Assembly (NCBI GenBank): GCA_001179505.1
Contig: CDMY01000231.1
Span: 62,001 to 126,000 of the forward strand
Source: Vitrella brassicaformis CCMP3155
Lineage: Eukaryota; Protista; Chromerida
Length of the DNA: 64,000 nucleotides
Direction of reading: 5' to 3'
Under the pieces are notes generated by a model. That model ran no database searches. It was not told the origin of the DNA and saw nothing but the letters and a program-made list of their open reading frames with translations. The translations under genes were made by a program, and so were the position numbers. The first letter of the stretch is position 1. Every line of letters starts with the position of its first letter. Of the stretch, positions 2,853-62,338 are shown piece by piece.

Positions 2853-3046
2853 GATTCCATCAAGGATTCTCGCAAACCGTCTCTGTCCGTCCCTTCAATT
2901 TGCTTCATCTGATTCCATCAATTGGATATCTTGTCTTCTCTCTTTTCGTTTGCTCTCTCGACCGGCCTGTGCTCAAACCTTTCAAGCCTGTTCTCTCTCG
3001 CGTCACGAGCCTTTCAGCTGCATCTACCCTCGTGCTGCAGTCCACC

Positions 3047-4681
3047 ATGACTCGACTCTCGGCTGCCGCGGTGTGCCTCATCTTCCTGGTGTCGGCTGCC
3101 CTGGCCGACGATGCTTCGCGCAACGCGCTCCGCTCCATGCGCGGCAAGAACGCTGCTGCCAATGATCAAGGTGCATAGGAATGAGACCAGATGCCTGCAC
3201 ATTACAGCCCATCACATCACTTGTCTGCCTGTCGTCTCTCTCTCCCTTTTTTTGTGCAGCTGCGGATGATCTTGTGTCCGGCCTCAGGTGGACACACAGC
3301 ATCCCTGAGCTGGACAGCATGCCTGAGGAGCCACCCCAGCATCGCGCCCTGTGGCCCAAGATCAGTGCGCCCAAGATCCCCGCGCCCAAGATCAGCCCGC
3401 CCAAGATCAAAAGCCCCGATCTCGGCAATCTGGGTAAGACAGCAGGCAAGGCTGCTGGGGCGTACTACGGAGGCGCTGCTGGAGCCGCTCTTGGCGGGGC
3501 CGTTGGGTCGAAATTCGGCCCTGGGGGGACGGCGGCAGGGTCGGCTATTGGCACGGCTGTTGGCGCGACAGAGGGAGCAAAGCATGGGGGCAAAGCTGGA
3601 GAAAAGGCCGGAGACTGGGTGGAGGACCGGCTCGGCGGCTCTTTCGGGTTCAGACGTCTGAGTGACGACACGGCCGATGCAGAGGTAGGAGGGATGGGAG
3701 AGAGGCACTGGGCTTGCTTCAGCACTTGGTCGCATTGCACCCCATCTCATTATCTCATTGCTGTCTGTCTGTCTGTCTGTGAGTGCAGGACGCCGCGGAT
3801 GATCTTGTGTCCGGCCTCGAGGACAAGCACGCTGAGCAGCATGAGGAGGAGCCACCCCAGCATCGCGCCCTGTGGCCCAAGATCAGTGCGCCCAAGATCC
3901 CCGCGCCCAAGATCAGCCCGCCCAAGATCAAAAGCCCCGATCTCGGCGATCTGGGTAAGACAGCAGGCAAGGCTGCTGGGGCGTACTACGGAGGCGCTGC
4001 TGGAGCCGCTCTTGGCGGGGCCGTTGGGTCGAAATTCGGCCCTGGGGGGACGGCGGCAGGGTCGGCTATTGGCACGGCTGTTGGCGCGACAGAGGGAGCA
4101 AAGCATGGGGGCAAAGCTGGAGAAAAGGCCGGAGACTGGGCGATGGACCGGCTTGGCGGCTCCTTCGGGTACAGACGTCTGAGTGACGACAAGGCCGATG
4201 CAGAGGTAGGAGGGATGGGAGAGAGGCACTGGGCTTGCTTCAGCAGTTGGTGGCATTGCACCCCATCTCATTGCTGTCTGTCTGTCTGTCTGTCTGTCTG
4301 TGAGTGCAGGACGCCGCGGATGATCTTGTGTCCGGCCTCGAGGACAAGCACGCTGAGCAGCATGAGGAGGAGCCACCCCAGCATCGCGCCCTGTGGCCCA
4401 AGATCAGCGCGCCCAAGATCAGCCCGCCCAAGATCAAAAGCCCCGATCTCGGCAATCTGGGTAAGACAGCAGGCAAGGCTGCTGGGGCGTACTACGGAGG
4501 CGCTGCTGGAGCCGCTCTTGGCGGGGCCGTTGGGTCGAAATTCGGCCCTGGGGGGACGGCGGCAGGGTCGGCTATTGGCACGGCTGTTGGCGCGACAGAG
4601 GGCGCAAAGCATGGGGGCCGATTGGGAGAAAACGCCGGAAACTGGGCGGAGGACCGGCTTGGCGGCTCCTTCGGGTACTAG
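3047..4681 (+). CDS. Secreted glycine-zipper peptide polyprotein A (signal peptide + 3 repeats); exons 3047-3170, 3260-3684, 3789-4205, 4310-4681
   Basis: Signal peptide MTRLSAAAVCLIFLVSAALA. GT-AG introns keep the frame (phases 1,0,0). Each of exons 2-4 encodes an acidic spacer, HRAL, (PKIxx)n, a GxxxG zipper and GGSFG(F/Y), followed by RRLSDD in exons 2-3 and by the stop in exon 4. Confidence 0.9.
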
Positions 4682-4861
4682 ACTGGTAGATGAGTGGTAG
4701 ATGCTTGCATGGGGAGGGATGGGCACGCGGTTTCGGCTCATAGGAGATGAGGTAGACTACGGGGGTTCATGATTGTGGCTGCCCATGAATGCTCTGTCTG
4801 TCTTTCCCATTCCCGTGTATGTGTACACCCCATTCATGTATGTGCGTGTATGTACGTGTAG

Positions 4862-5365
4862 ATAGGCAGGTAAGTAGGTAGATCGGTTCGGCGCTGCCGT
4901 GCCAGTAGCGTAGGGTTCACAGATAGAATGGGCAATGGGGTCGGCTGACTGGATGCTATTCATGATGACACGAGGCTGGGGCTTCGTGAATTTCATGATC
5001 ACATGGATATATAAGTGTACACTAGGCAGATCAGCTGATAGGATAGATGTAACATTGTGTATATGCCTGTTGACGTCACCGTTTTCCTTTTCACTGTCTG
5101 TCTTGTCCCATCGTAACGTGTGTGTATGTGCTGCACGGGGCTGGGCTTCGTGAATTGCGTGATTACATGTATTTGCACACTACGCATTCCCGTTGCCCTC
5201 CATGTGTGTGTCCATGTGTCGACAGGTAGGTAGGTGTAGATAGCTGTGCCAGTAGAGTACGGTAAGACAGATACAAGGGGAATGGGCTCGACTGGCTGTC
5301 ATCTTGATGATGCACGAGGCTGGGGCTTCGTGGATTGCATGATTACACGCATGTGTACCCATACA
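4862..5365. repeat. ~170-bp degenerate repeat units in the 3' flank of polyprotein A
   Basis: GTAGGTAGATCGGTTCGGCGCTGCCGTGCCAGTAG...GATGACACGAGGCTGGGGCTTCGTG recurs at ~4862, ~5222, ~10452 and ~10722, with a degenerate inverted copy at ~805-895. Confidence 0.7.
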
Positions 5366-5780
5366 TTCTCGTTCGGTCTGGTGAGCCTACGCGTAGTGCG
5401 CCCTCTGTGTTTCCTGTCGTATGGTTGGTCAGTTGTGGGTCTTCCACATATCCACAGGTGTGGCTGTCTGTCTGTCTCCTGTCTGGCTGTCTCCTGTCTG
5501 GCTGGCTGCCTGTAGTTTTCATGTGTCTGTCGTTAATCACTTTCATACGCGTGTATGTGTGGTGTGTCGTTTGGCCAAGTGGGCTGTGTGTGCCTTGTTT
5601 GTAAGTATGTTTGCATGAAGCACGCCTTGTTGATATGCGAATTATGACGGGATGCATGGATGGAGGGATGAGACGCAATCAAGGACACACATTCACTACA
5701 CATTAAGTCGATTGAATCACAGTTTGAGTCCCCAGCACCAAGTACATCCATCAAACGAGGTCCACCTGTCAGTCAGCTGG

Positions 5781-7007
5781 CTAGTGGTCGACCATCGCAT
5801 CCGCCCCATGAGCCCCTCCCCCACTCACAGCAGTAGCAGCAGCACCACCGCCACCACCACCAGAGCCATTCAACAGACGATCAGACATGACTGCACACAC
5901 AGAGAGAGAGACACACATGAATCATGCGTGCGTGTGTCGTGCCCTTCTCCCTCTCTGGCTGACATGACGGCCTCGGTTCCTTCTTGTCGTCTCCTGGTAT
6001 GAGTGTGGTGATGGGCACCCACTCGGGCGGCTCCTGGTCGCCACACCGCCATGATATCACCTGCAGCGAAGAGTGTATCATGCAGCATTCACCACCAATG
6101 GGGTTTTCCTTTCCGTCCTCCTCCCCCCCTTACTGTTCCGTCATCTGCCGCTGCGGTGAGGACGGTGCCGGTGACGTTGAAGCACACACGCCATATCTGC
6201 ACACATACAGCCCACAGTTGTCACGAAGCATGCACTGAATCACACAACGCAATGGGTGTGATCTTAGGAGGCGGGCTCACCGGTCCCGGCGATATTTCGA
6301 TCTTCTGCAGGATCTGGAGCAGCCACTTGTCGGACGCGCCGGCCACACCCGACTCTGCGCAGACACAGACACTCAGCGAGAGATGCCTGTCTGTCGCGTA
6401 CACAACACACACAAGCTTGTTGCTTCCGTGCATACCAGCCGATGGTGGCAAGATGGCCTCCGCCTGAGCAAGGGGGCGAGCCGTCTGTCGATGGACGTAT
6501 GTCTGCCTGGCTGTGTGCCAGCCCTATTACTGACCGGTGCGTTGGCCGATGTGTCCTGTTGTGGCTGCTGCTTCCACTGCCATATGTGCACCAGGGGCTC
6601 GTCCCCACAGGTGGCCAGCAGATCATACGGCCTGCATAGGTTGGGTGCCCACGCCACATCCTTCAGAGGGGCACTGCTCGCCTGCACACACACACACACA
6701 CCAAGACAGGCCGATCCCATCCCGGCCGCCAGCCAACCTTTTGCTCTGCAAGCCTCGACCAGCCCCGTCCACTCCTGAAATGGACCACAGCAGCCAGCCA
6801 TGCGGTGATCCAATCCATCGCTGTGTGTGCCGCCCGCCATGCCATAGATCGATCTCTCACTCACTTGCCCCAGACGTCGAGTATGCCGTCGTTGCCCACC
6901 ACGGCCAGTATCTGGTCCTCACTGTCGAAGTTCCACGCCAGCGCCGTGCAGCCTCGGGGGCAGTTGCTACGCTTGTGACTTGTGAAACAATCCTCCTGAC
7001 CGATTGA
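5781..7007 (-). pseudogene. 5'-truncated duplicate of Seh1 (last exons only)
   Basis: Near-identical to 11420-12700 (VAWAPNLCRPYDLLATCGDE; IWRVCFNVTGTVLTAAADDGT). Similarity ends at ~7017 inside an intron, so the N-terminal WD40 exons are absent. Confidence 0.85.
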
Positions 7008-7174
7008 TTGAACACACACCTCATCACACTCGAACCCTGGAACCCCGCAAACCCTTGCCTGATTTGAATAAGCCAGGAGAGAACGCTCCCGCGAAGACGG
7101 AAGATCTTTCCACCTCTTTCATCTGTCCCTTCTTTCCCTCCCTCTCTACCTGCCCACAGTTCGCTATCCCCTCC

Positions 7175-7200
7175 CCCCGGCCTGAGGTCATCTCAGATCT
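7175..7200 (+). promoter_or_regulatory. Second copy of the 26-bp upstream element
   Basis: Identical to 2827-2852; ends 17 nt before the ATG at 7218. Confidence 0.5.
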
Positions 7201-7217
7201 CTCATCTCGGTCAGGTC

Positions 7218-7718
7218 ATGAAGATTGTGATGTGCCTTGTTGGTGCCCTTCTGCTGGCTGCTGCTGTCTGCGGTGCCATGACCGATGCAACCGCGCCATC
7301 TGACGCCGCCACCAATGTGATGGTGGGGAACGTTCAACAGGAGTGGAAGGAGCGCCTGCTTCCTTCCCTGTGTGTGTTTGCAGGTGCTTCGCGGATCCGT
7401 GAGCGCCTCCGCGGACGACGTCGATATGGACAATGGTGAGCCCCTCAACGGCTTATTCTCCTCATGTTCTGGGTGCATGTGTGTGCGTCCTGCCTTCCTG
7501 CAGCTCACGACGCTGAGGCTGAGGCGGAGAGGCGTGAGCTCCAGATGTACTGTTCCCCCGGCATGTGTTTCCCCCCGCCCTGCTGCTTGTCATCTCTTCC
7601 ATCTGTCAGTCGCTACTGTCCCGACTCCATGTGCAACCGCCCCCGTCATCCCTGCTGCGTTCGCCAGTGGCCAGGATCGCAGGCGGCATGGTCACAAGCA
7701 CGGCGACGACCATATTAA
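7218..7718 (+). CDS. Secreted cysteine-rich peptide precursor; exons 7218-7322, 7384-7435, 7504-7718
   Basis: Signal MKIVMCLVGALLLAAAVCGA, acidic pro-region (..ADDVDMDNAHDAEAEAE), RRELQ, then YCSPGMCFPPPCC and YCPDSMCNRPRHPCC. Splice phases 0 and 1 keep the frame. Confidence 0.85.
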
Positions 7719-8908
7719 TTAGAGGTGAATGGGGAGGAGAGAGCTGCGTGCAGAGTGCATTGCTCGATGTATCTGGCGAATGCACATGCAGGTGAGTGAG
7801 TGGGCGACTGACTGCACCGCCGACTGCTGATGGATGGATGATTACATGGACAACTTGTAGCCTAGTCCTCTGATCTGACTATCCTGCTACACTACGCTGG
7901 TGGGGGATGTATGCAATCATTCCACGCATGGTTTGCTTTTTTCCGTTGCTCGTGCCATTCATTCGTGTGTCTGTCTGTATCGGTACCACGTAATCATTCA
8001 CATGGTCGGTGCTGGAATGCGCGTGCCAACTCTGATTGGATGTGTACAATCGGTGCACACGGTCGGCGATGGCTGGCTGGTCCCTTGCGGGTTCGTGTGC
8101 TGTGTTGTTCCCACCACAAACAACCCCTCGTTTGTCTGTCTGCCTCAGGGTGTCTCTGTGCCAGGCTTCCTGTTTCATTTTGATGGTTGTATTTGTCCTA
8201 GCTAGTGTATTTGTCGGTCCTAGTACGTCACTTTGCCTGCCTGCCTGGCGCAGTTGTTCTTTCGAAAACATGTGTATAACACGAACAGACGCTGTGTCGT
8301 GTGCTCGGTGCGTAAGGAAAATGAAATGATCGTACATGGCGAAGATTCACGTTTGCATCCATACACATATCATATGCACAGTCTGCATGATGTCTGAAAT
8401 TGGCGCTGTCATACCAGCGGGGTACGTCACACGAGGGGTGCAGAGGTGGAGGTGAATGACTACACCCCTCCAAATCAAGTTTGCAATGGGATTGTGTATA
8501 ACAGCCTGCTCGTGCTCGCGTTTGCACGCGCCGCAGCAGCGGGGCCATCGTTCTTCGGCAGCTCGGGCGTTAGGGCGCCGTTGAACAAACGTCCTGTGAT
8601 GATCGACGAGGAGGCGACGCAAAGCTTGGTTTGATGTGATAGAGAGCAGGGAGAGCGCCTCTTTTCCTTTCTTTAAGTTTTCGAATTGGAATTCAAGAAC
8701 GGACGGGCGAGAGAGAGAGAGAGAGATGTAGTTTTTCGTCTCCTTCTGTCTCGCTCTCTCTCTGTCGCCCCGCCCACCCGCCTCCCTATTCTCCGTCGCT
8801 TCCCTCATCCATCTTTTCCTCTTCTCTCTTGCCGACACTGATCCGCCTTGCCTCGAGCCTCAGACTTGCTATCGACCTGCTCTCTCTCTGAAGCCTTTCA
8901 GCTGCATC

Positions 8909-10281
8909 ATGACTCGCCTCTCGGCTGCCGTGGTGTGCCTCATCTTCCTGGTGTCGGCTGCCCTGGCCGACGATGCTTCGCGCAACGGGCTCCGCTCCAT
9001 GCGCGGCAAGAACGGTGCTGCCAGTGATCAAGGTACATAGGAATGAGACCAGATGCCTGCACATTACAGCCCATCACATCACTTGTCTGCCTGTCGTCTC
9101 TCTCTCCCTTTTTTTGTGCAGCTGCGGATGATCTTGTGTACGGCCTCAGGTGGACACACAGCATCCCCGAGCTGGACAGCATGCCTGAGGAGCCACCCCA
9201 GCATCGCGCCCTGTGGCCCAAGATCAGTGCACCCAAGATCAGCCCGCCCAAGATCAAAAGCCCCGATCTCGGCAATCTGGGTAAGGCAGCAGGCACGGCT
9301 GCTGGGGGGGCTGTTGGGACCAAGTATGGAGGCCCTGTTGGAGGCGCAGCTGGCGCGGCCGCTGGGGGCCGATTGGGAGAAAAGGCCGGAAACTGGGCGG
9401 AGGAGCGGCTTGGCGGCTCCTTTGGGTACAGACGTCTGAGTGACGACACGGCCGATGCAGAGGTAGGAGGGATGGGAGAGAGGCACTGGGCTTGCTTCAG
9501 CAGTTGTTCGCATCGCACCCCATCTCATTGCTTGCTGTCTGTCTGTCTGTCTGTGAGTGCAGGAAGCCGCGGATGATCTTGTGTCCGGCCTCGAGGACAA
9601 GGACGCTGAGGAGCATGAGGAGGAGCCACCCCAGCATCGCGCTCTGTGGCCCAAGATCAGTGCGCCCAAGATCCCCGCGCCCAAGATCCCCAGCCCCGAT
9701 CTCGGCAATCTGGGTAAGGCAGCAGGCACGGCTGCTGGGGGGGCTGTTGGGACCAAGTATGGAGGCCCTGTTGGAGGCGCAGCTGGCGCGGCCGCTGGGG
9801 GCCGATTGGGAGAAAAGGCCGGAAACTGGGCGGAGGAGCGGCTTGGCGGCTCCTTTGGGTACAGACGTCTGAGTGACGACACGGCCGATGCAGAGGTAGG
9901 AGGGATGGGAGAGAGGCACTGGGCTTGCTTCAGCAGTTGTTCGCATCGCACCCCATCTCATTGCTTGCTGTCTGTCTGTCTGTCTGTCTGTGAGTGCAGG
10001 AAGCCGCGGATGATCTTGTGTCCGGCCTCGAGGACAAGGACGCTGAGGAGCATGAGGAGGAGCCACCCCAGCATCGCGCCCTGCAGTTCAGCCTGCCCAA
10101 GATCCCCAGCCCCGATCTCGGCAATCTGGGTAAGGCAGCAGGCACGGCTGCTGGGGGGGCTGTTGGGACCAAGTATGGAGGCCCTGTTGGAGGCGCAGCT
10201 GGCGCGGCCGCTGGGGGCCGATTGGGAGAAAAGGCCGGAAACTGGGCGGAGGAGCGGCTTGGCGGCTCCTTCGGGTACTAG
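8909..10281 (+). CDS. Secreted glycine-zipper peptide polyprotein B (paralog of A, shorter zipper); exons 8909-9032, 9122-9462, 9563-9895, 10000-10281
   Basis: Same signal exon (124 nt) and intron phases as A. Repeats HRAL(W/Q)-(PKIxx)n-DLGNLGKAAGTAAGGAVGTKYGGPVGGAAGAAAGGRLGEKAGNWAEERLGGSFGY-RRLSDD. Confidence 0.9.
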
Positions 10282-10451
10282 ACTGGTAGATGAATTGCGG
10301 ACGCTTCCATGGTGTTGTGGGGCCGGGAGGGAGGAGTGAGAGGCGTCCTCTTGGGTCATGGGCCATGTCATGTATGCCCTGTCTGTCTTTTCCCATTCCC
10401 GTGTATGTATGTACCCCACTTATGTGTGTGCGTGTATGTGCGTGTAGACAG

Positions 10452-10870
10452 ACAGGTAAGCAGGTAGATCGGTTCGGCGCTGCCGTGCCATTAGCGCACG
10501 GTACACAGATGCAATGGGCAATGGGGTCGGCTGACTGGATGCTATCATGATGACACGAGGCTGGGGCTTCGTGAATTTCATGGTTACATGGATATACAAG
10601 TGTACACTGGGCAGATCGCTTCGGCCGTGAACATGCACAGTGGTGTGTCACCCTTTTGCCTCGGGCCGTGTGTCTTTTCGCGCTCTCATGTATGAATGTG
10701 TGTTTGTGTGCACGTGTAGATAGGCAGGCAGGTCGGTACGAAGGGTAGTCGCTGCCGTGCCAGTAGCGTACGGTACACAGATACAATGCACTGGATGGAT
10801 GGTGTGACGATGATGCACGAGGCTGGGGCTTCGTGGATTGCGTGCTCACATACGTGTGTTTGTACACTAC
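10452..10870. repeat. ~170-bp degenerate repeat units in the 3' flank of polyprotein B
   Basis: Same unit as 4862-5365, two copies. Confidence 0.7.
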
Positions 10871-11419
10871 GCGTTGCTCAAATGATTTGAGTTGGTTATT
10901 TGTGGGAACCATAGCGTGGGCGGCTGTGGTTTTCATCTGACTGACTGTCGATACGTGTACGTGAATGTGTGATGTGCCGTGTGGCCGAGTGGGCTGTGTG
11001 AGTGTCTGTGGGCCGAGTGCACGTACAACACTGATGGGATAAATGGATGGATGAGATTACGGTCGAGTGGAGTTCATGCCGCACTTTTCGCCTTCTTCGC
11101 TATTCGTCGGACTGAGTTACGTATTTGTGGGCTTCACAGACAGAGGTGCCTCCGTTTTCATTTGTCTGTCTCACTCATCTTCATACGCCTGCATGTGTGT
11201 GGTGAGTCGTGTGGCCAAGTGGGCTGTATGTGCCTTGTTTGTAAGTATGTTTGCATGAAGCACGCCCTGTGGATATGCAGACAGGATGGGGGGATGCATG
11301 GATGGGTGAGACACAATCAATGGGACACATTCACTTCACATTGAAGTCGATTGGATCACGCTGTGAGTCACCAGCACCAAGTACCTCCATCAAATGAGGT
11401 CCATCTGTCAGTCAGCTGG

Positions 11420-13685
11420 CTAGTGGTCGACCATCGCATCCGCCCCATGAGCCCCTCCCCCACTCACAGCAGCAGCAGCAGCAGCACCACCGCCACCGCC
11501 AGTGCCATTTAACAGACGATCAGACATGACTGCACACACACACAGAGAGAGAAGAGAGACACATGAACCGCGCGTGCGTGTGTCGTGCCCCCCTCTCTCT
11601 TTGGCTGACATGACGGCCTTGGTTCCTTCTCGTCATCTCCTGGTATGAGTGTGGTGATTGGCACCCACTCGGGCGGCTCCTGGTCGCCACACCGCCATGA
11701 TATCACCTGCAGAGAAGAATGCATCATGCAACATTCACCAATGGGTTTTCCTTCCCGTCCTCCTCCCCCCCTTACTGTTCCGTCATCTGCCGCTGCGGTG
11801 AGGACGGTGCCGGTGACGTTGAAGCACACACGCCATATCTGCACACATACAGCCCACAGTTGTCACGAAGCATGCACTGAATCACACAACGCAATGGGTG
11901 TGATCTTAGGCGGGTTCACCGGTCCCGGCGATATTTCGATCTTCTGCAGGATCTGGAGCAGCCACTTGTCGGACGCGCCGGCCACACCCGACTCTGCACA
12001 GACAGACACTCAACGAGAGATGCCTGCCTGTCGCGTACACACGCACACAAGCTTGTTGCTTCCGTGCATACCAGCCGATGGTGGCAAGATGGCCTCCGCC
12101 TGAGCAAAGGGGCGAGCATGAGATGCCCTTCTGTCGATGGGCGTATGTCTGCCTGGCTGTGTGCCTGCCCTATTACTGACCGGTGCGTTGGCCGATGTGT
12201 CTTGTTGTGGCTGCTGCTTCCACTGCCATATGTGCACCAGGGGCTCGTCCCCACAGGTGGCCAGCAGATCATACGGCCTGCATAGGCTGGGTGCCCACGC
12301 CACATCCTTCAGAGGGGCACTGCTCGCCTGCACACACACACACACACACACACACAGAGCACAACACAATGTAACGCACACGCACATCCCATCAGCCCAG
12401 CCATCGACCGGTCAGCCAACCTTTTGCTCTGCAAGCCTCGACCAGCCCCGCCCACTCCTGTAATGAACCACAGCAGCCAGCCATGCGGCGATCCAATCCA
12501 TCGCTGTGTGTGCCGCCCGCCATGCCATAGATCGATCCCCTACTCACTTGCCCCAGACGTCGAGTATGCCGTCGTTGCCCACCACGGCCAGTATCTGGTC
12601 CTCACTGTCGAAGTTCCACGCCAGCGCCGTGCAGCCTCGGGGGCAGTTGCTTCGCTTGTGACTTGTGAAGCAATCCTCCTGACCGATTGATTGAACACAC
12701 AGCTGCAATGTGTGGGTGGTGATGGCCGCCATTGTGTGCGTACCATTGGCCACGCCCCGAGCGAGAGGAGGTCTTGCGCCTCGTAGATGCGGACGCTGCC
12801 GTCGGCACTGCACGTGGCCTGATGCGTCGCGTGGGTGGTTGAGCATTCATCCATCACACACACACGTGCGCGCCTCGGCTCTCTGTTTGTTGGCTGACCA
12901 GTCTGAGTCCATGCTTCTTGGGCGAGAACTGGATGTCGCGTACGGGCATCTGACACGGATATTTCGACGCAGGCCACAATGTGACCGTAGGGCGATGACC
13001 GTGTGTGCGTTGGATCGATTCACTTGTGCGTCTGAGAGTTTCGCTCTCCTCTTCCATATGTTTGTCAGATCTGCCGGCGCGCCGACATTCTCAGCGTGGC
13101 CCTTTGGTCTGTATCTCTCCGACCAGATGCAGACAGTCCTGTCCTCCGAGCAAGTCGCAAGAACCTATCCGCCAACGAGTACCTCTGTAGGGCCCACACT
13201 TGCGTGTCTTCTCTTGACTCGACTCACCTGGCCGAACTCGGGATGCGCCCAGTCGACCCGCCAGATGGGAGCATCGTGAGCCTGACCACACACAGACGAT
13301 CTAACCCGTGCGTGCCGTGCCTCGAGACCACCCGTCGTACGCTCTCGATGTTGGCTGACTCATTCCACTCGCCGCTTCTCTGGTCGTAATCAAACACAAT
13401 GACCTTCTGAGATGACGAACACACCGCCAGCCGGTCACCTGCATGAGCGACGGAGGGAGAAGAGTCAAGTCATTCAGTGAATGAATGAATGAACGAGTGA
13501 ACGTTGTAGTGTATTAGCGGTTGGTGTGACTGTGCTTACCGTAGTAGTTGTATGTGATGTCGTGGATGTAGTCTGCTGACGTCGCCAGCCTCACTGTGAT
13601 GCTCTTGTCCAACCGCTGATAAATCAACACAAACGACAAGCAACGGACGAACGCTGTGATTGATTCATCTTCCTTTGCTGACCAT
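11420..13685 (-). CDS. SEH1: Nucleoporin / GATOR2 WD40 protein Seh1, full-length and multi-exon
   Basis: N-terminal ..SADYIHDITYNYYG|DRLAVCSSSQKV.., VRDIQFSPKKHGLRL, ATCSADGSVRIYEA, VAWAPSLCRPYDLLAT and WRVCFNVTGTVLTAAADDGT match Seh1/Sec13 WD40 blades. The YDLLAT and IHD..Y motifs favour Seh1. The first exon appears to supply only the ATG (13683-13685). Confidence 0.85.
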
Positions 13686-14323
13686 CCTGACGCGCGGCTG
13701 TATGGCGCTGCTGATCTTCTCACTTTTGTTTGTTTGTCGAATTTTAGCTCGCACGCCGATCGGGCGCTAAGGGCTTCTTTCCATCTTCCCTTCGGTGCAG
13801 TGCGGCTCAGCCTTACCTCTGCGGGCTTATGCGTGCGGATCATTCGAAAAAAAACACCTCAATTGCATCCACATTGGATGCAGTACGATCAATGCATGCA
13901 ACTGGATGTCCCCTCCTGCCCACCGCACGTCCTGCCTCATCGAAAACCCGTCGAAGCCAGCCGAAAAGGGGAATTCGCCTTTGGCTTGCCTTGTTTGCTG
14001 TATCTGCAAACGCCAAAGCAACCCAAGTGCAGCGTAGAGATAGAGAGGAAGAGGGATCGGGAACGGGAAAACGCGAGAGCAGCACAACGAGCCATGCAGC
14101 GCAAAACAGCGCACGTGATACGTCGGGAGGCCGTGCATCTTTCAGATGCTGGCCCACGCATCCCCACTGATGGCTTCCTTCCTTCGGTGCCCACACGCAA
14201 ACAAACAGCCACACACGGTGACTTACTAAGACATCCCCACCGGCCGCACACACATACGGCATCAATGGCAACTTCATTGGTTTGACGCCACTCATTCGAA
14301 TCACATCCCTCCCCTTCCACCAC

Positions 14324-15322
14324 CTACACTACTATGGCGTCACCAATTAGCACAGAGTCAGCGAGTTCGACGGGCAGCTTGCATGTCTCGGTCGATAGAA
14401 AGAACCCCACCTGAGCTGTGCTGACCGTTTCCGCGGTGAAATTGACCGTCAGGAAGGCCACCCCGGTCGGAGGCGGGTTCTTGATAAGCTCTTCGGAGGG
14501 CGCTATGAACACCTGCATTATACAGACGGAAACAAACGAGATGGGCAGCTAAACCGCAGGAAGACGCCTGGGTTCAGCTGCAAAGGCTGACCACGTCCTC
14601 GAAGGTGATTCTGTCCTTGTCAGTGTCGGCGTCGGACTCGCCAACCACTTCGTTCATGACCCCTTGGACAGTGATATCGACGTCGCCCACGAGGCTGAAC
14701 AACAAGGCAGACACGGACGCAAAGATGGACAGACCCAGGCGATAGAATCGATTTCCTGTGAATGAAGTGGAGTCGCTCGGTTTGTCCTCTTTCCCACCTG
14801 TTGGAAGCTATGACCAGCACGGGTTCTTTGATACCCTGGCAAGCAGAGCACAACAACAGCAGGACAGGGGTGACGCATACGCCCCCGCGTACGTACGTGC
14901 GTTCGTACCTCTGGTATGCTGTTGAGGGGCACAGTAACGTCCAGAATGACCTGTCGCGTCTTTTTGCCGACAAAGGCATTGACAATGTGCGGTTTCATAT
15001 TGCCCTCGAACGCCAGCGTTGCACAGATTTCCTCGTATCCATCGGTCTGCTCCGTCACTTGACTGACGTCGTCTTTCGTCAGCCGCGCAGCGCCAACCTT
15101 CTTGACGCTGCCTGCTGCGTCCCGCACAGACATTTTGACATTCTCTCTCCTTTTGAGGCTCTTGCCATCCTCCCTGCTTCGGTGGAGCAGCTCTATCTTC
15201 CCCCGGATGTCCTCGAGCTTCTCTCTCAATTGCAAGTTGGCGTCAAGCGGCGACGGAAGGGAGCTTTGCACCACCGGCTGAGCGAAGGCCGCAGCAAGGA
15301 GGAAGAGGGCCGTGGCACTCAT
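14324..15322 (-). CDS. Secreted hypothetical protein, possibly with a beta-sandwich (LEA2/Ig-like) C-terminal domain
   Basis: Signal MSATALFLLAAAFAQ; long open exon 14890-15322; further exons (LVGDVDITVQGVMNE..., VFIAPSEELIKNPP...GDAIVV*). Confidence 0.6.
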
Positions 15323-15391
15323 ATTTTCCCGGACGCACGCATTTACGCTAGCTACGCTGTTGCCAGACCGTTTGAGAAAACGGCAGCAAGA

Positions 15392-17460
15392 ATGAGGTCT
15401 TTCCCTGCTCTCTGCCTTGCCCTCGCGGCAACACAGCTGTTTGCGGGTGAGCACCACACTCACTCAACCACATTTGCCTGCCTGCTGATGTCTGTGTGTT
15501 GCTTGTGTGCAGCTGCGCAGGACAGTGAACCCAAAGTCCTGGAGCCCAAGGAGCAGGTGTTCCTTGTGGGCTCCATCAACGGCGAGAAACACCTGCACAA
15601 TGCGGCTCCCATCACCGTCGACCCCTTCCCCCTCCATCCCCCCGAGCCGCCCCGCACAGTCACCATCCTCTTCCAGCCAGACCCCGAGCACGCCACCAAA
15701 GAGCTCGAGGACATCCAAAGCGTCCAGTTCACCGTCAGGAATGAGAAAGGAAGAGCAGTCTACAATCGGACGACGTCCAGTCCACCGTTCTCCCTCTTTG
15801 CCCACGAGAAGGGGACATTTCAGGGTGCCTCGCTCGGCACCAAGACTCCCAGCACGCAGCTGAGGCGGAGCCTGCAGAAGGACGGCAACCATCACTCTTT
15901 CCTGCTGCAGGGGCGCCACACCCTTGAGGCGGCGGTGCTGCGGAAAGGAGACAAAGACCCCAAGGTCTTCACCGTCGATCTGAAGACGACGAACCACAGT
16001 GAGCCAGAGATGCAGACAGACCTACCAGCCTGCCACCCACCACTCATTCATGGATGGCTCTCTGTCCGTTGCGTGCAGGTAGCTCGTTGCTGACCCATCC
16101 CGGGATAAGTGGGATAGAACTCGAGAAGGAGACATCCGACGAGTGGTTCGGCTCTCTCAAGGAAGCGGCCACCAAGGCGGGCATCGCCTTCGGGTCCGCC
16201 ATCTGCCAGACGCCATTCGACCTGCAGGGCACACCGAGATGCCGATATGGCGGCGAGGGGGCGTACCAAGCCATTGTGAGAGAGGAGCTGGCTGTCATAT
16301 CGCCCGAGAGGGAGTGCAAGTGGTGGTTTACCCGGACGAGTGCGGACTTGGATGAAATCGACTTCACTGGCTGCGACGACATCTTTGACCTAGCCATCGC
16401 CAACAAGCAGCAGGCGCGCTTCCACACGCTCCTGTGGCACAGCGACGCCTTCTACGGCAACATCGAGGAGTGGCTTCACGCCATGAAGGCCGTCGACAAG
16501 AGAGCCCAGCTGATCGGCCACATTGAGAAAATGGTCGAGAGGTATCGGACGCCCAAGTACTCCAACATCATCGCATGGGACGTTGTCAACGAGGGTATGG
16601 CACATACGCACAACTTAGGTGTCTTGACGTCTGTTTGTCTGTGTCATGTGATCTGTGTGTGCAGCGATTGATGACGCGCAGGACGAAGCCGAGGTCAGGA
16701 GCGGCGGCTACAAGCTGCGTGACAGCATGTGGCATCCCGACCTCCCCGAGTATATCGACCTCGCCTTTGTTTACGCCCACAAGGCCGGACAGGCCGCCGA
16801 CGCCAAGCACAACTCCACCACGATGCCGCCCATGAAGCTCTTCTACAACGACTACTCGTGCGAGTCCACTGAAGGCTACAGCGGCACCAAATCGGACGCC
16901 GTCTACAACCTCTTGGCGGGCATGAAGAGACGTGGGGTGCCTGTCGCAGGGGTCGGCTTCCAGTCGCACGTCAACGGCGAGTACAGCTACTATGAGGGCG
17001 TGCGGAAGAACATGCGGCGTCTGGGCGAGTTGGGGCTGGAGGTGCAGTTCACCGAGCTGGATGTGGCCTGCGGCAAATGGGGGGTGGGTGCGGGGGACGA
17101 CCCCGGCTACACGCCCTGCAAGCAATCCGAATGGACACCGGAAAGAGAGCTGCAACAGGCGAGAGGGACCAGAGACAAAGCACAGGCGAAGACAGAGTCC
17201 ATGCGACCTCTCTCCATTTGTGCCTCTAGGCGGAGATATACCGGCAGTTTATGCGTGTATGTCTGGAAGAGCCCAACTGCACCGGCTTCATCACATGGGG
17301 CTTTGTGGACAAGTCATCGTGGCTCAACCGGGGCATGTATTCCCCTGACTGGCCGCTGCTCTTTGACTCGTCATACAAACCCAAGCAGAGCTACCTCGCA
17401 CTCAGAGAGGAGCTGAGGAACCACACGATAGCCGCGGAGAAGATGGGGCGCCGACAGTGA
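15392..17460 (+). CDS. Secreted GH10 endo-beta-1,4-xylanase with an N-terminal accessory domain
   Basis: Signal MRSFPALCLALAATQLFA; GH10 motifs HTLLWH, WDVVNE (acid/base Glu), KLFYNDY, GVGFQSH, FTELDV (nucleophile Glu), TWGFVDKSSW and PLLFD. Confidence 0.9.
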
Positions 17461-18021
17461 CGCCGGCCAGCGTCGTGCGTAGTGTTTGCGTCGCGTCAAG
17501 TGGTGCTGTGCTCTCTGACGGGCGACTTAGGCAGTGAAGTATTTTGTGGTGTTTTGTGTTTTGTGTGGCGGAGGCAGATATGAGACAAGACACCGAATGT
17601 CGGTGTCATTCCATCCACTGACTGTCGAACAAGTGGTTTTGAGCGAACTGGGGTCTCCTCGATTGCTGATTGGGCGGGGTGATGTGTGTGTGAGAGATCG
17701 AAGGTGTGCATGCGCCATGGATGAGACATCATCGCATTCACGATCGTTCAACTGACAGGTCGTCCGTTCATGTAATTAATGCGAACAAGCCGATCGGATC
17801 GCTGGATGGATGTGTGTCCGCCTTGCCTGCCTACCTGTGAGCATGACTACAGCTCTCACTTGACTGTCAAAGACCGCATTGATTGACAAATACTACAAAG
17901 AACGACAAAGGAAAGAACACATGCAGCGAACGAATGCACTGCAAACACATCTCCATCACCAAACAGAGGACAGCTCAGCTCAGCTCAGCTCAGCTTGGCT
18001 GCTGCTCATGTGTGCGTTCGT

Positions 18022-18885
18022 CTAGGAGCCGCCCTGCAGCACACGCTTCGACACCTTCCTGCACGTATCCCTCACACTCTGCACACACACGAGAAGACAG
18101 GCAGCCGGGAGAATGAAGACACCTCTCTGCACACACACATGTGTGGCTTCCTTCCTCCCGTACCTCCTTGAAGTAGCCATAGAACTCGTTCTGTGAGCAC
18201 CGGCCATAGCCACCCCTCCCCTCCCCGCCACACGTCGGCCAATACAGGCCCTCGGACCGGTCGATGCATGTGTTCAGCTGCACCAAGTAACACACCAAAG
18301 GCCCTAGGAAAGCAGCAGCCTGCGGCGCAAAATTCGGGCGGCATTGCTCCCGAACGTAGCCACAAGCAGTCGAAGCGATGCCCTTGGCGGCACTGTTGCT
18401 GAACTGGGTGCAGGGGTTGGAAGAGCTGCGGCAAAAGGGTGAGGGGTCACAGGACTGGAAGCACCGATAGAGACTCTGACCGGACAGCAGGTTAGAAACG
18501 CACTGCGAGCAGCACTTTCGTTGCTGCAGGGCGCGCCCGCTGCCCTCCTCAGCCTCAGCGTCCACCACCCCCACACAGCCGTCCTCGTCGCAGTCGACGA
18601 AGGCCTCGGCGGCCATGTCGGTGTCGTTTGCTGGTGAGGGGGGAAAGATGGGCTGATGCGCTGTGACATTCGGGGGCGGGACCGGCTGTTGCGATGGGAT
18701 GGGAGGGCTCGCCTCACCTACAGAGAAGCACACATGCGCAATAACATAGATAGATAGTCCACCCTCTTCATCCGGTTGTTACCGCTCGTGGATGTCGATT
18801 CATTCAGGGGTCGCCCGTGCGGCTGAGAAAGCACCGCTGCGATCAGACAGAGGAAGATAAACGGACACAGCGCACGAGTCACCAT
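18022..18885 (-). CDS. Secreted cysteine-rich protein precursor; exons 18885-18783, 18717-18164, 18078-18022
   Basis: Signal MVTRALCPFIFLCLIAAVLSQ, then RPLNE, a Pro/acid-rich pro-region, GRALQQ and a 14-Cys mature region ending KRVLQGGS*. Splice phases 1 and 0 are consistent. Confidence 0.8.
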
Positions 18886-57516: not shown

Positions 57517-58290
57517 AGGATGATTATGGGGCCGTGGCGAGGGGGAGGGAGGGAGGGAGGGAGAGAGAGCGAGCCTGGCTGGCTGTGTAACTAACGGTGA
57601 GTCCGTGAGCGAGGCGTGTTGTTCGTATGTACAGGTGGGCTGGCCAAGAGTCGCTGGTTGGCTGTCGAAGCGGGATCTGGTTGTGTGGTGTGTGTGTGTG
57701 TATATATATATATATCGCTTCCTATGAACGCGACGGAGGCTGGTTGGCTGCATGGATGGAATGTCTGTTGCCTGACGGACTGACCAGGGAGGGGAGGGGA
57801 GGGGCAATAAGATTTCGCCATTCAGTCAGCTGCGACAGACATGCAATCATCCATCCATCATTCAAGGCATTCAAGGCAAAGGAGAGGTCTGTCGATTTGC
57901 ACTGCAGGCGCATGCACATGCACGTCTGTCTGTCTTGTGTCTGCTATAGATGAGTGCACTCATGCAACCATCACTGCATGGCTGGTACAAACACACAAAC
58001 ATGGGAATACATACATACAGACATCTGGAGCTAAGACGCACCGCACCAACCGACACACACCCACAGCCCACAGGCAGACAGACAGACAGCCCCAATAACT
58101 GTAGGTAGGTACTGTACGATCCTTTCCTTGGCCAGCTGTTTGCTCTCGACCGACCAGTCAGTCAATCAATTGGCTAACTAATTGGTTAACAAACAAAGGA
58201 CACACGCGCACACATACACACACATAGGTACATCCATCCCATACACGTACAAGCACACGACCCCACCCCCCACCCCCCCTGCACATGGCC

Positions 58291-58590
58291 NNNNNNNNNN
58301 NNNNNNNNNNNNNNNNNNNNNNNNNNNNNNNNNNNNNNNNNNNNNNNNNNNNNNNNNNNNNNNNNNNNNNNNNNNNNNNNNNNNNNNNNNNNNNNNNNNN
58401 NNNNNNNNNNNNNNNNNNNNNNNNNNNNNNNNNNNNNNNNNNNNNNNNNNNNNNNNNNNNNNNNNNNNNNNNNNNNNNNNNNNNNNNNNNNNNNNNNNNN
58501 NNNNNNNNNNNNNNNNNNNNNNNNNNNNNNNNNNNNNNNNNNNNNNNNNNNNNNNNNNNNNNNNNNNNNNNNNNNNNNNNNNNNNNNNNN
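58291..58590. other. Assembly gap (300 N)
   Basis: Run of N. Confidence 1.
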
Positions 58591-58952: not shown

Positions 58953-61900
58953 TCATGCTGTCCTGACAGGCATGGGTATGGCGGGCTGTTGCCGCAGCTC
59001 ACGTTCCCTCTCGTCAAAGTCATCCTCGTCGCTGTCGTAGTCTTCGCCTAGCTCAATCGGCACATCACCTGTGTGGATGAACGAGACGGACCGACACATA
59101 TGAGAAAGAAGTCTCTGTGTGTGTGTGTGTGTGTGTGTGTACCAGGGTAGTCTCCGCCCCTGTAGTTGCTCATCTGTATCTCGCGTAACCTCTGCTCCTC
59201 CTCATCGTCCTCCTCTATATCACCCACACACATACGCACACATACACACAGAGCCGGAGGTGCACACCTCGTGTTGTCTTTTTTTCCCTTTTCGTGTGGC
59301 AGCAAATGGGTGTGTGTCTCTGTATACCGGCCATGGTCTCGTAGGTGACGGGTTTGGTCCTTACGGACTGACAAATGATCACGATCATCGCTGAAAGACG
59401 GAGGGAGGGAGGGAGGGAAGGGCCAGAGGCACACGGAAAGAGCATGCGGGGAATTGTTTTCATGTTTGTCATATGGGTACGTACCGATCAGTACGGCAGA
59501 GACCCCGACAATCGCTGCCGTCCAAATGCCTGCAGGACCCACACACCCACACCACAACACACCACACCACAACACACCACAACAGAGAGGGTATCAGAAA
59601 GCAGCTGCCAACGCGTGAAGCCATAACCCCCCACTGACCGATCTTAGAAGAGAGTGCGGCCTCGTCCATGCTGGCGTCTCCTCCCTCGCCCGTGAGTGTC
59701 TGTCCGCCCTCACTGATGGTGCCATTACGTCCCTGCCCCCTGTCGCTCGAGCCCTGTTGTGCATGGGGATAGGACGGGGGGGCGGGGGGATGGGGCAGCG
59801 CATGACCATCCAGAGTATTCGACTTGCCACCACCCCCTCCACTGGATGGCTGTGCTGGTGCTGGTGCTGGTGGGTGTGGGATGGGGGCGGATGAGTCGTC
59901 GAGTGGTGGTGGGACGGTCGTGTCAGAGGTGGATGTGTGTGGACGAGACACAGGGGGCAGGGCAGTGGGGGTGCGTGGGGGGCTAGATGGGCTAGACGAC
60001 GAGGATGTGTTGGCGGGGGGTGGGCTAGGGGTGCTCGTGGTGGTGCTCGTGGTGGTGGTGGTGGTAAGCAGTGGTGCGTCCGTGTCTGTCGATACCGGCG
60101 GACTTGTCGAGTAGAACTCCTTCGGATACAGCGGCAGGGCCTTGTGCTCAGGAGCTGACAACCACACACACAGAAGGCCATGTTTTCCCGTCCATCCCTC
60201 CCTCGTGACCGACAGTACGACGGTGGCTTACGTGGCGGCCTCAGTTTGTCCAGGTATCTTGGGCATGCTGCATCGGCGAAACCTGCATCCACCCAACACA
60301 ACACCACAGCACACCGCAGCACACCACATCAACCTGTCCGTCTGTCTGTCTGTCTGTCTGATGGTTTTCGGCTTGGCACTCTCTTGTCTGTCGTGCCGAC
60401 TGACCGACTCTATCCTCGGTGCGGTCAAATATGACGTCCCTCTGCACCATGAACGACATGCCCAGCACCGTGTCATGCTTCCGGTTGTCGTCGATGGCCA
60501 AACACCACTTCCTGATGAACAAACCAACCAACCACAGACACACAGCACACGGTCAATGGGGAAGGCGGGCAACTGAATGCCTCTTCTCCCTGCGATCGTC
60601 TCTCTCTCTCGTACTTGGACGGTGGCTTTGGGAAGAGGTACGAGTGCGCTCTCCAATGGATGGTGCCGCCACCCCTGCAATCAACCAACCAACCACCGAC
60701 TCCATCCACAGGCGCCCCGTCCCTCCCTCCCTCTGCCCCTCTGTGGTCTCTCTCATCTATCTCGCCCCACCCACTTGAAGGTGATTCTGAAGACGGGGAA
60801 GGTGTCGAGGTCCTTCTCATCCTCAATCTCCCAGCAGTCGTCCGAGTGGTGGGTCCGCACGCCCTTGCAATGCTCGGGGTCCTTACAGAAGCTCTCGAAC
60901 GTCTCGGAGATGCCCTTCCATATCTCGGGAGGCACATACGTGAATGTCGTGCCTGACCGACAGACAACCCACGAACGGCACGACAGACTGACAATGCGTG
61001 TCGTTCTCCAGTGTGTGCATATACATGCATGGGTGTACCAGAGTCGACAATGACCGATCCCCAGGCAGAGCGGCCCCCCAGGCTCTTGCCCTCGATGTCG
61101 GCATCCTGCAAATGGATTGCAAGAATGATGCGGCCCAGAGGACACATATATCAGCATGATGGATCTGATCGCTAAGGCGGCTCACTCACTTCGATTCCAA
61201 TGGAGTAGTAGAGATGGTTCTCCATGGGCGTCCACACGACCGTCGGCTTCTCCTCCGCATTGTCATAGTTGCGGTGGAGGCTCTGGTTGTACCCACCCAC
61301 AGTCAGTATGCCACCCTGATCCGCCAAACATATGGCGAACACCTTCGTGTCGACCGCACCTTTCTGAGGGAGGGAAGGAAAAGAGAGCAAAGTAGGCAGA
61401 CAGACAGACAGGCAGCAGACGGGAGTGAGTGACGGAAGGGCCAAGAGTGGCGTGATATGATCGGCCGGACGGCTTCATTTGATGGGATTGAGCTGACCTG
61501 GTCGCTGAAGAGAGCATCGATGATGGTCTCGTGGTCCCTTGACCGCCTTGGTGCCACACCCACAATGCCGCTGGCCTTCTGGGTGGTGAACAGCTTGGTC
61601 TCGGCATCATGGCAACCTGACAGACACAAGCACCCACCCCACCCACACCAGCCACATACATACACACATACATTTAATCACACCGCCATTCCATTCTCTG
61701 CCATTCATTCGTTGTGCCCGCCTACCAGCATAAGCCTTGACTGCAGGATTCTTCCGTTCAACATCGCCTATGCGGATGTAGTCCTGGAACCAGTAGCCCG
61801 CAATGCTGGAGCCCTCCGTGTAGCCCTGGTAGTAGCTGCACCGCTCATTGCGGCAGGGACACCCACCCTCACATTGCTGCCAGCAACCACACACACACAC

Positions 61901-62338
61901 AAGCACAGACAAACACAGACACCAGAAAACAGACAGAGGTCAGCGATACAGCCCACACGTGTGGCCGTCGGCGGTATGTGCGATGTGATTTGCACCAACC
62001 ACAGGAACTGTACATACCTGCCACTCAGCGGTGTCGGAAGCGCTGAAGTCGAATGGCGCATCGATGTGGTTGCCGCAGTTTTTGCAGTTTTTGCAGGGGA
62101 AGGCCAAGATGGTGCTGCCCGTATCCAGAATGACGCTCTGCCGCTGCGGGACGGGGGATCCCACGAGGATGTCGATGAAGTAGTAGGCGTAGCCGTGGAT
62201 GGAGCCGTAGATGCGCGCCTCCTCCAGCTTCTTGCCCGGCTGACACACCACCACCGCACATGGCACCAACACCAACAGCAGCACCAGCCACAGACAAGGC
62301 CTGACCGGCCGATGACGGCCTCTCCGCCTTGGCAACAT
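58953..62338 (-). CDS. Plasmepsin V / ASP5-like membrane-anchored aspartyl protease (family A1); start could extend to 62500
   Basis: YG.I..YAYYFIDILVG.P..QRQSVILDTGS.ILAFPC.NC.NCG.H, YYQGYTEGSSIAG, GCH..ETKLF..QKASGIVG, VFAICLADQGGILTVGG, VIVDSGTTFTY, VLGMSFM and a C-terminal TM (IWTAAIVGVSAVLIG) with acidic tail. Motif order matches Plasmodium plasmepsin V as I recall it. Confidence 0.85.

Follow-up and report, generated by a model that had tools for sequence, protein, structure and literature searches.

The 64,000-nucleotide stretch of the Vitrella brassicaformis CCMP3155 genome analyzed here (contig CDMY01000231.1, positions 62,001 to 126,000 of the forward strand; hereafter the window) carries four genes, designated A, B, C and D, for predicted secreted precursors in which an Arg-x-Leu (RxL) tripeptide closes an acidic segment. 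The precursors appear to be built on one plan, with a signal peptide, an anionic pro-piece and a cationic product. In A and B (A/B) the product would be a peptide rich in Pro/Lys and in Gly/Ala, present three times per gene, and in C and D it would be a Cys-rich domain. Across the three independent families that these genes represent, the RxL layout looks like a cleavage signal. We infer that an endoprotease of the secretory pathway cuts after the Leu, freeing the basic products from the acidic pieces, which would keep them neutral during transport. Such processing would follow the logic of the RXL sites in diatom wall-protein precursors and of the PEXEL/TEXEL sites in Apicomplexa. The probability that cleavage at RxL of the A/B, C and D precursors is real can be put at roughly 45%.

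The four gene models of the preliminary description hold, on evidence of different kinds. Gene B (8909..10281, plus strand; exons 8909-9032, 9122-9462, 9563-9895 and 10000-10281) encodes 359 residues and matches exactly a public protein of that length (P0001). The product of gene C (7218..7718, plus strand; exons 7218-7322, 7384-7435 and 7504-7718) is identical to a 123-residue V. brassicaformis protein (P0031, MMETSP/UniRef), and an RNA contig (X1 record 5) skips both introns of the gene as well as one in its 3' untranslated region. The latter intron is found at 7723-7789, downstream of the stop codon (7716-7718), and the contig continues to 8339. For gene D (18022..18885, minus strand; exons 18885-18783, 18717-18164 and 18078-18022), a spliced transcript contig, L001, lacks both introns, and its translation gives the complete protein of 237 residues. 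Gene A (3047..4681, plus strand; exons 3047-3170, 3260-3684, 3789-4205 and 4310-4681; 445 residues) was modelled in parallel with gene B and is supported by its homology to it; its GT..AG introns, of 89 and 104 nt, are in frame, and the RNA contigs that fall on it are short and unspliced only. One contig of run X2 has an extra in-frame GAG (Glu) at position 4354 of the window, in the acidic spacer of the last unit of gene A, which is an allele or a paralogue variant. Short GT..AG introns give the genes of the window a eukaryotic form.

The precursors had been described as four unrelated ones. This count has to be lowered to three independent families, A/B, C and D, because A and B are recent paralogues, 97% identical over their first 300 nt. 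They lie in a segmental duplication of about 5.8 kb (5.6-5.9 kb; 2900-7000 and 8800-12700 of the window) that also takes in a portion of a WD40-repeat gene on the minus strand. Identity among the six A/B units is 84-99% within a gene and falls to as little as 67% between A and B, and their introns are 70-94% alike. No relation between C and D could be detected (BLASTP E above 1).

A hydrophobic core is present at the N-terminus of all of the proteins, with a maximum KD of 3.0-3.4. In gene A the signal peptide precedes three exon-sized units comprising an acidic spacer, HRAL, a basic peptide of Pro/Lys plus Gly/Ala, and RRL. The order within the internal exons of A/B is acidic spacer, HRAL, Pro/Lys repeat, Gly/Ala-rich segment, GGSFG(F/Y), RRL and SDD(T/K)ADAE; the composition is one of Pro/Lys plus Gly/Ala, without Ser/Lys clusters. 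In the final unit of both A and B, the stop codon comes directly after GGSFGY, exactly where the internal units begin RRL. Because the last copy ends just there, RRL is assigned to the linker; as the second A/B site, it would close each internal peptide and is probably removed together with that linker. The product of gene C consists of a signal peptide, an acidic pro-region ending DAEAEAERREL and a basic domain with eight Cys residues, and that of gene D of a signal peptide, a Pro-rich acidic pro-region ending DAEAEEGSGRAL and a basic domain with 14 Cys residues. Although C and D are unrelated, the pro-regions of both (residues 54-66 of C and 86-99 of D) end in DAEAE...R-x-L-Q. RxLQ is also found in the third unit of gene B and at the C-terminus of gene D. 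A cut after the Leu in C and D would leave an N-terminal Gln, which could form pyroglutamate.

Every motif listed in the preliminary description (HRALW, HRALQ, RRLSD, RRELQ, RPLNE, GRALQQ and KRVLQ) is present where it had been placed. Genes A and B have five RxL sites each. In gene A, HRALW stands as an N-side fence at the acid-to-base step (R-A-L codons at 3343-3351, 3864-3872 and 4385-4393, plus strand) and RRLSD as a C-side fence (R-R-L codons at 3652-3660 and 4173-4181, plus strand; residues 173 and 312). Gene B has HRALW twice and then HRALQ (RAL codons at 9205-9213, 9638-9646 and 10075-10083, respectively, plus strand), and RRLSD at 9430-9438 and 9863-9871 (RRL codons, plus strand; residues 145 and 256). 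Gene C harbors RRELQ (REL codons at 7533-7541, plus strand). On the minus strand, gene D has GRALQQ (RAL codons at 18535-18527, residue 96), RPLNE about four residues past the predicted signal cleavage site (RPL codons at 18813-18805) and KRVLQ (RVL codons at 18045-18037). A fourth RxL of gene D, RALCP (RAL codons at 18876-18868), lies inside the signal peptide and was absent from the earlier list. The proposal that RxL marks boundaries between pro-regions and mature products is borne out insofar as the tripeptide closes the acidic pro-region in three independent families; it does not extend to RPLNE and KRVLQ, which are probably chance occurrences, as cuts there would free pieces of only seven and four residues, respectively.

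The tripeptide partitions the precursors by charge. When the A/B proteins are divided after every RxL, the pieces alternate between an isoelectric point (pI) of ~4.1 (net charge -10 to -13) and one of ~10 (net +5 to +8), the exceptions being the first acidic piece, with a net charge of -3, and the last B peptide (+2, pI 9.3). The same operation divides C into pieces of -8 and +6, and D into pieces of -12 and +8. In a test of position, the strongest acid-to-base charge step was located in C, D and a single unit of A, and the 10 residues after it were compared, with the step recomputed in shuffled sequences. In all three the strongest step precedes the RxL boundary by 3-7 residues, and RxL is the only gapped dipeptide common to the 10 residues past the step. 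The shuffles gave a P of 0.014-0.053 for any shared motif and of ~0.0003 for RxL specifically.

These results bear on the possibility that no code is shared, in which case RxL would reflect chance or composition in Arg- and Leu-rich proteins of a genome with 58% GC, A/B would be unprocessed repetitive proteins of the wall or surface, and C and D would be matured by signal peptidase only. We regard this as unlikely. The P value of the position test is low even with no prior choice of motif, the split into pieces of pI ~4 and pI 9-10 is clean in all four proteins, and precursors known to be cleaved show the same order of acidic and then basic parts, with repeats the size of exons (PMC4557024). 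On the other side, it can draw on the number of RxL tripeptides, which is 7 in the non-redundant set versus 2.2 expected (P 0.008, uncorrected) and ranks 5th among 1200 gapped dipeptides, so that it is not significant after correction. Whether RxL exceeds background, a question that the preliminary description had raised, therefore receives a divided answer: its placement after the acid-to-base step beats the shuffles, whereas plain counts do not stand once corrected.

The count is one of several points that weigh against cleavage at RxL, for which the arguments are drawn from sequence. The motif is short and was picked after looking, and the genes themselves were selected in the preliminary description because they contain it. 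The charge-step test is partly circular, because the Arg itself adds to the step, an effect limited by recomputing the step in the shuffles. Chance copies of RxL occur within these same proteins, as seen from the one in the signal peptide and from those that would yield tiny end pieces. While EEPPQHRAL is invariant in six of six A/B units and both of its flanks vary or carry indels, this says little, since the units are recent duplicates and cannot be counted as independent. No homologues by which the conservation of RxL could be judged were found outside the Vitrella genome. Among 1.84 billion representatives, the A/B unit retrieved only gene B and weak Gly-rich matches with E values of 1.6e-7 or worse, and searches with C and D returned their own sequences only.

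No Pfam family scored above threshold for A/B, C or D. Gene C, whose product bears the UniRef name Granulin, matched no Pfam family with exon 3 up to an E value of 1 or with the whole protein up to 0.1. The glycine zipper family PF13488 reached 15.0-18.4 bits (E 0.002-0.024) in the Gly/Ala segment of A/B, below the Pfam cut-off of 25, and protein atlas look-ups with the A/B unit and with D gave no usable match. AlphaFold2 models were too poor to show folded products, with pLDDT values of 40.8 for exon 2 of D and 47.8 for an A unit. The low zipper scores and the poor models are both in keeping with the absence of a shared code.

The surroundings of the sites raise another alternative. Four of the six site types have RR, RK or KR at or within four residues (GGSFGY-RR, AEAE-RR, RALQQ-RK and VS-KR), a further point to be set against RxL as the signal. 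In classical dibasic processing, a convertase of the kexin/subtilisin type would cut after these pairs and a carboxypeptidase would trim off the basic pair, the Leu being incidental. Dibasic polyprotein precursors such as yeast alpha-factor and insect apidaecin undergo kexin/furin-type processing, and A/B resemble them in their tandem peptides, in the combination of a basic pair with an acidic Asp/Glu/Ala spacer, and in a last copy without spacer. Moreover, RR is the sole dibasic pair in each of the Lys-rich A/B units, with 2 pairs in gene A versus an expectation of 5.5, which looks like avoidance of internal pairs, and the last units of A and B stop after GGSFGY and before RR, as cleavage at RR followed by trimming would leave on the internal copies. 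That stop position fits the silaffin precedent equally well, as the RRIL/RRNL endings are removed there (PMC4557024).

Dibasic processing is a live alternative, though an unlikely one. A kexin-type precursor has a dibasic pair at every peptide junction; in A/B, in contrast, RR is found on the C-side only and there is none on the N-side, and their spacers do not consist of regular X-Ala dipeptides. Since the acid-to-base boundary of A/B, PPQHRAL-WPK, contains no dibasic pair, the acidic spacer of 36 residues would remain on every peptide if dibasic pairs were the sites. The three independent boundaries have RxL in common but no dibasic motif, and in gene D the RK comes four residues after RAL. 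Only cleavage at RxL accounts for both fences of A/B, because the N-side fence lacks a dibasic pair.

For cleavage at RxL, precedents are found in diatoms. In the Sil1p precursor of Cylindrotheca fusiformis, a signal peptide and an acidic domain precede basic repeats with RRIL or RRNL at their ends, and the mature peptides lack these tetrapeptides (PMC4557024). RXL domains also occur in cingulins, silacidins and Sin1, as well as in silaffins generally; they are removed by an unidentified protease, and RXL has been proposed as an endopeptidase signal (PMC4557024, PMC5525289). As in the diatom RXL precursors, whose acidic domain ends in RXL, often RRL, the A/B, C and D proteins have an acidic pro-domain after the signal peptide that ends in RAL or REL. 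The predicted anatomy of A/B resembles that of Sil1p in its basic peptides (pI ~10 in A/B), its internal units ending in RRL and a last unit whose end falls short of RRL. The closest known counterpart is found among diatom RXL-type precursors and not among PEXEL effectors. The differences are also clear. Vitrella is an alveolate and is not silicified, A/B are rich in Pro/Lys plus Gly/Ala and not in Ser/Lys, the products of C and D would be single Cys-rich domains, and there is no sequence homology with the diatom proteins.

The second set of precedents comes from apicomplexan parasites. In Toxoplasma, the TEXEL motif of GRA19 is RRLSD, which is cut by ASP5 in vitro. ASP5 requires Arg at both P3 and P2, and it did not cut the REL site RELLD of GRA21; TEXEL sites can fall anywhere in the protein, even close to its C-terminus (PMC4764566). 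A/B have in RRLSD the very sequence of the GRA19 site, and a gene for a protease of the ASP5/plasmepsin V (PMV) type is present in the window. The TEXEL core pointed out in the preliminary description is therefore found in RRLSD. It is found in none of the other sites: HRAL, GRAL, RPL, RVL and REL lack Arg at P2, and the failure of ASP5 to cut REL adds to the adverse points. TEXEL substrates are, furthermore, dense-granule effectors of a parasite, unlike the repeat polyproteins A/B.

In Plasmodium, PEXEL stands a short way past the signal sequence, and it is cut during translation in the endoplasmic reticulum, for export of the protein into the host cell (PMC4740378). The Vitrella sites share the R-x-L of PEXEL, which is cleaved after the Leu, and the flap Tyr and Glu of PMV are retained in the candidate enzyme. 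The consensus RxLx(E/Q/D) had been reported for three pentamers, RRLSD, RPLNE and RALQQ, and these do fit it; RALWP, RALQF, RELQM and RVLQG do not, and RALWP and RELQM belong to the best boundaries. A PEXEL protein has a single site a few tens of residues past the signal sequence. In contrast, the Vitrella sites are internal, multiple or C-terminal, most of them far from the N-terminus, and they belong to a free-living alga. The N-terminal, co-translational cut of PEXEL is another point against RxL as the signal here.

The best candidate enzyme for the RxL sites would be the product of a multi-exon gene at about 58953..62338 (minus strand), predicted to be an aspartyl protease of the plasmepsin V/ASP5 type. 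The gene lies 40 kb from those of its putative substrates, and this chromosomal distance carries no information on function. Besides the DTGS and DSGT motifs, its translation shows an insert rich in Cys, a YTEGS flap and, at the C-terminus, a hydrophobic segment read as a membrane anchor. Exon 1 matches P. vivax plasmepsin V (4zl4/8tyf) with an E value of 1.5e-18, the next family being at 1.6e-4. With exon 2, PMV is the sole match below an E value of 0.1 (next at about 0.8), and YTEGS is aligned to YCEGS. By these matches the protease belongs to the plasmepsin V/ASP5 type (clade D), with PMV as its closest solved relative. In PfPMV, the flap Tyr and Glu bind the P1 Leu and the P3 Arg, respectively, of the substrate (PMC4987639). 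Exon 3, in which the equivalents of Gln222/Ala224 and thus half of the S3 pocket would be expected, gave no alignment to PMV and is too short for phmmer; its motif LFTTQKASGIVGV looks, by eye, compatible with that half of the pocket.

The preliminary description had proposed a pre-parasitic form of the apicomplexan effector-maturation pathway, and the window of this free-living apicomplexan relative does contain a plasmepsin V/ASP5-type gene in which the flap Tyr-x-Glu and both catalytic motifs are kept. To act on all the sites, the candidate protease would need a PMV-like (RxL) specificity, because ASP5 needs RRL and did not cut REL, while PMV accepts RxL (PMC4764566). Just beyond the 3' end of the protease gene there is a gap in the assembly, a run of N at about 58290-58590.

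Genes A to D do not constitute a functional gene cluster, an idea that was rejected because they are interspersed with other genes, among them a WD40 gene and one for a GH10 glycosidase. The first copy of the WD40 gene (6058-6996) is still spliced, as indicated by five CT..AC joints in RNA contigs, which correspond to minus-strand GT..AG introns. The GH10 glycoside hydrolase gene (15400-17460, plus strand; introns 16005-16078 and 16595-16663) converges on gene D, and the 3' ends of the two genes overlap or abut, since the single unstranded transcript contig L001 joins both. (CTGT)n microsatellites are found just upstream of the acceptor of every intron that precedes an A/B repeat exon (3760-3781, 4270-4300, 9540-9556 and 9970-9990); they represent a simple repeat found genome-wide, as 3761-3781 is a place where many contigs without relation to each other end or are joined. 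Finally, P0012, a secreted protein of 317 residues, has two Gly-zipper-like repeats that end in GERAGAWVGGK(V/I)GH. This ending resembles the GEKAGDW...RLGG end of the A/B peptides, to which P0012 may be distantly analogous.

A literature search brought up no paper on chromerid RxL precursors. Neither PEXEL-like substrates nor proteases of the plasmepsin V/ASP5 type are discussed in the paper on the chromerid genomes, and a published phylogeny of aspartyl proteases from Apicomplexa covers sequences of Vitrella and Chromera without dealing with substrates. As for the role of the products, the 'peptide arsenal' of the preliminary description is pure conjecture and finds no support here; a wall protein would suit the Pro/Lys plus Gly/Ala/Tyr composition of A/B equally well. 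On a wider scale, RxL maturation by a plasmepsin V/ASP5-type protease might predate parasitism, the enzyme serving in Vitrella as a general pro-protein convertase that releases cationic peptides and small Cys-rich proteins from their anionic pro-pieces. The diatom RXL sites would follow the same ancient logic, and the PEXEL and TEXEL export signals would be later re-uses of a maturation code of the algal secretory pathway; this scenario is rather doubtful at present.

Should the sites prove to be dibasic ones, or to remain uncut, the locus would amount to a set of orphan secreted proteins. If they are cleaved at RxL, it would bear on what plasmepsin V and ASP5 did before apicomplexan parasitism. 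The two enzymes are targets for drugs, and the exportomes of malaria parasites and of Toxoplasma are defined by their motif. The locus provides expressed candidate substrates together with a candidate enzyme in a culturable free-living relative of these parasites, and it may link the alveolate motif to the RXL sites of diatoms.

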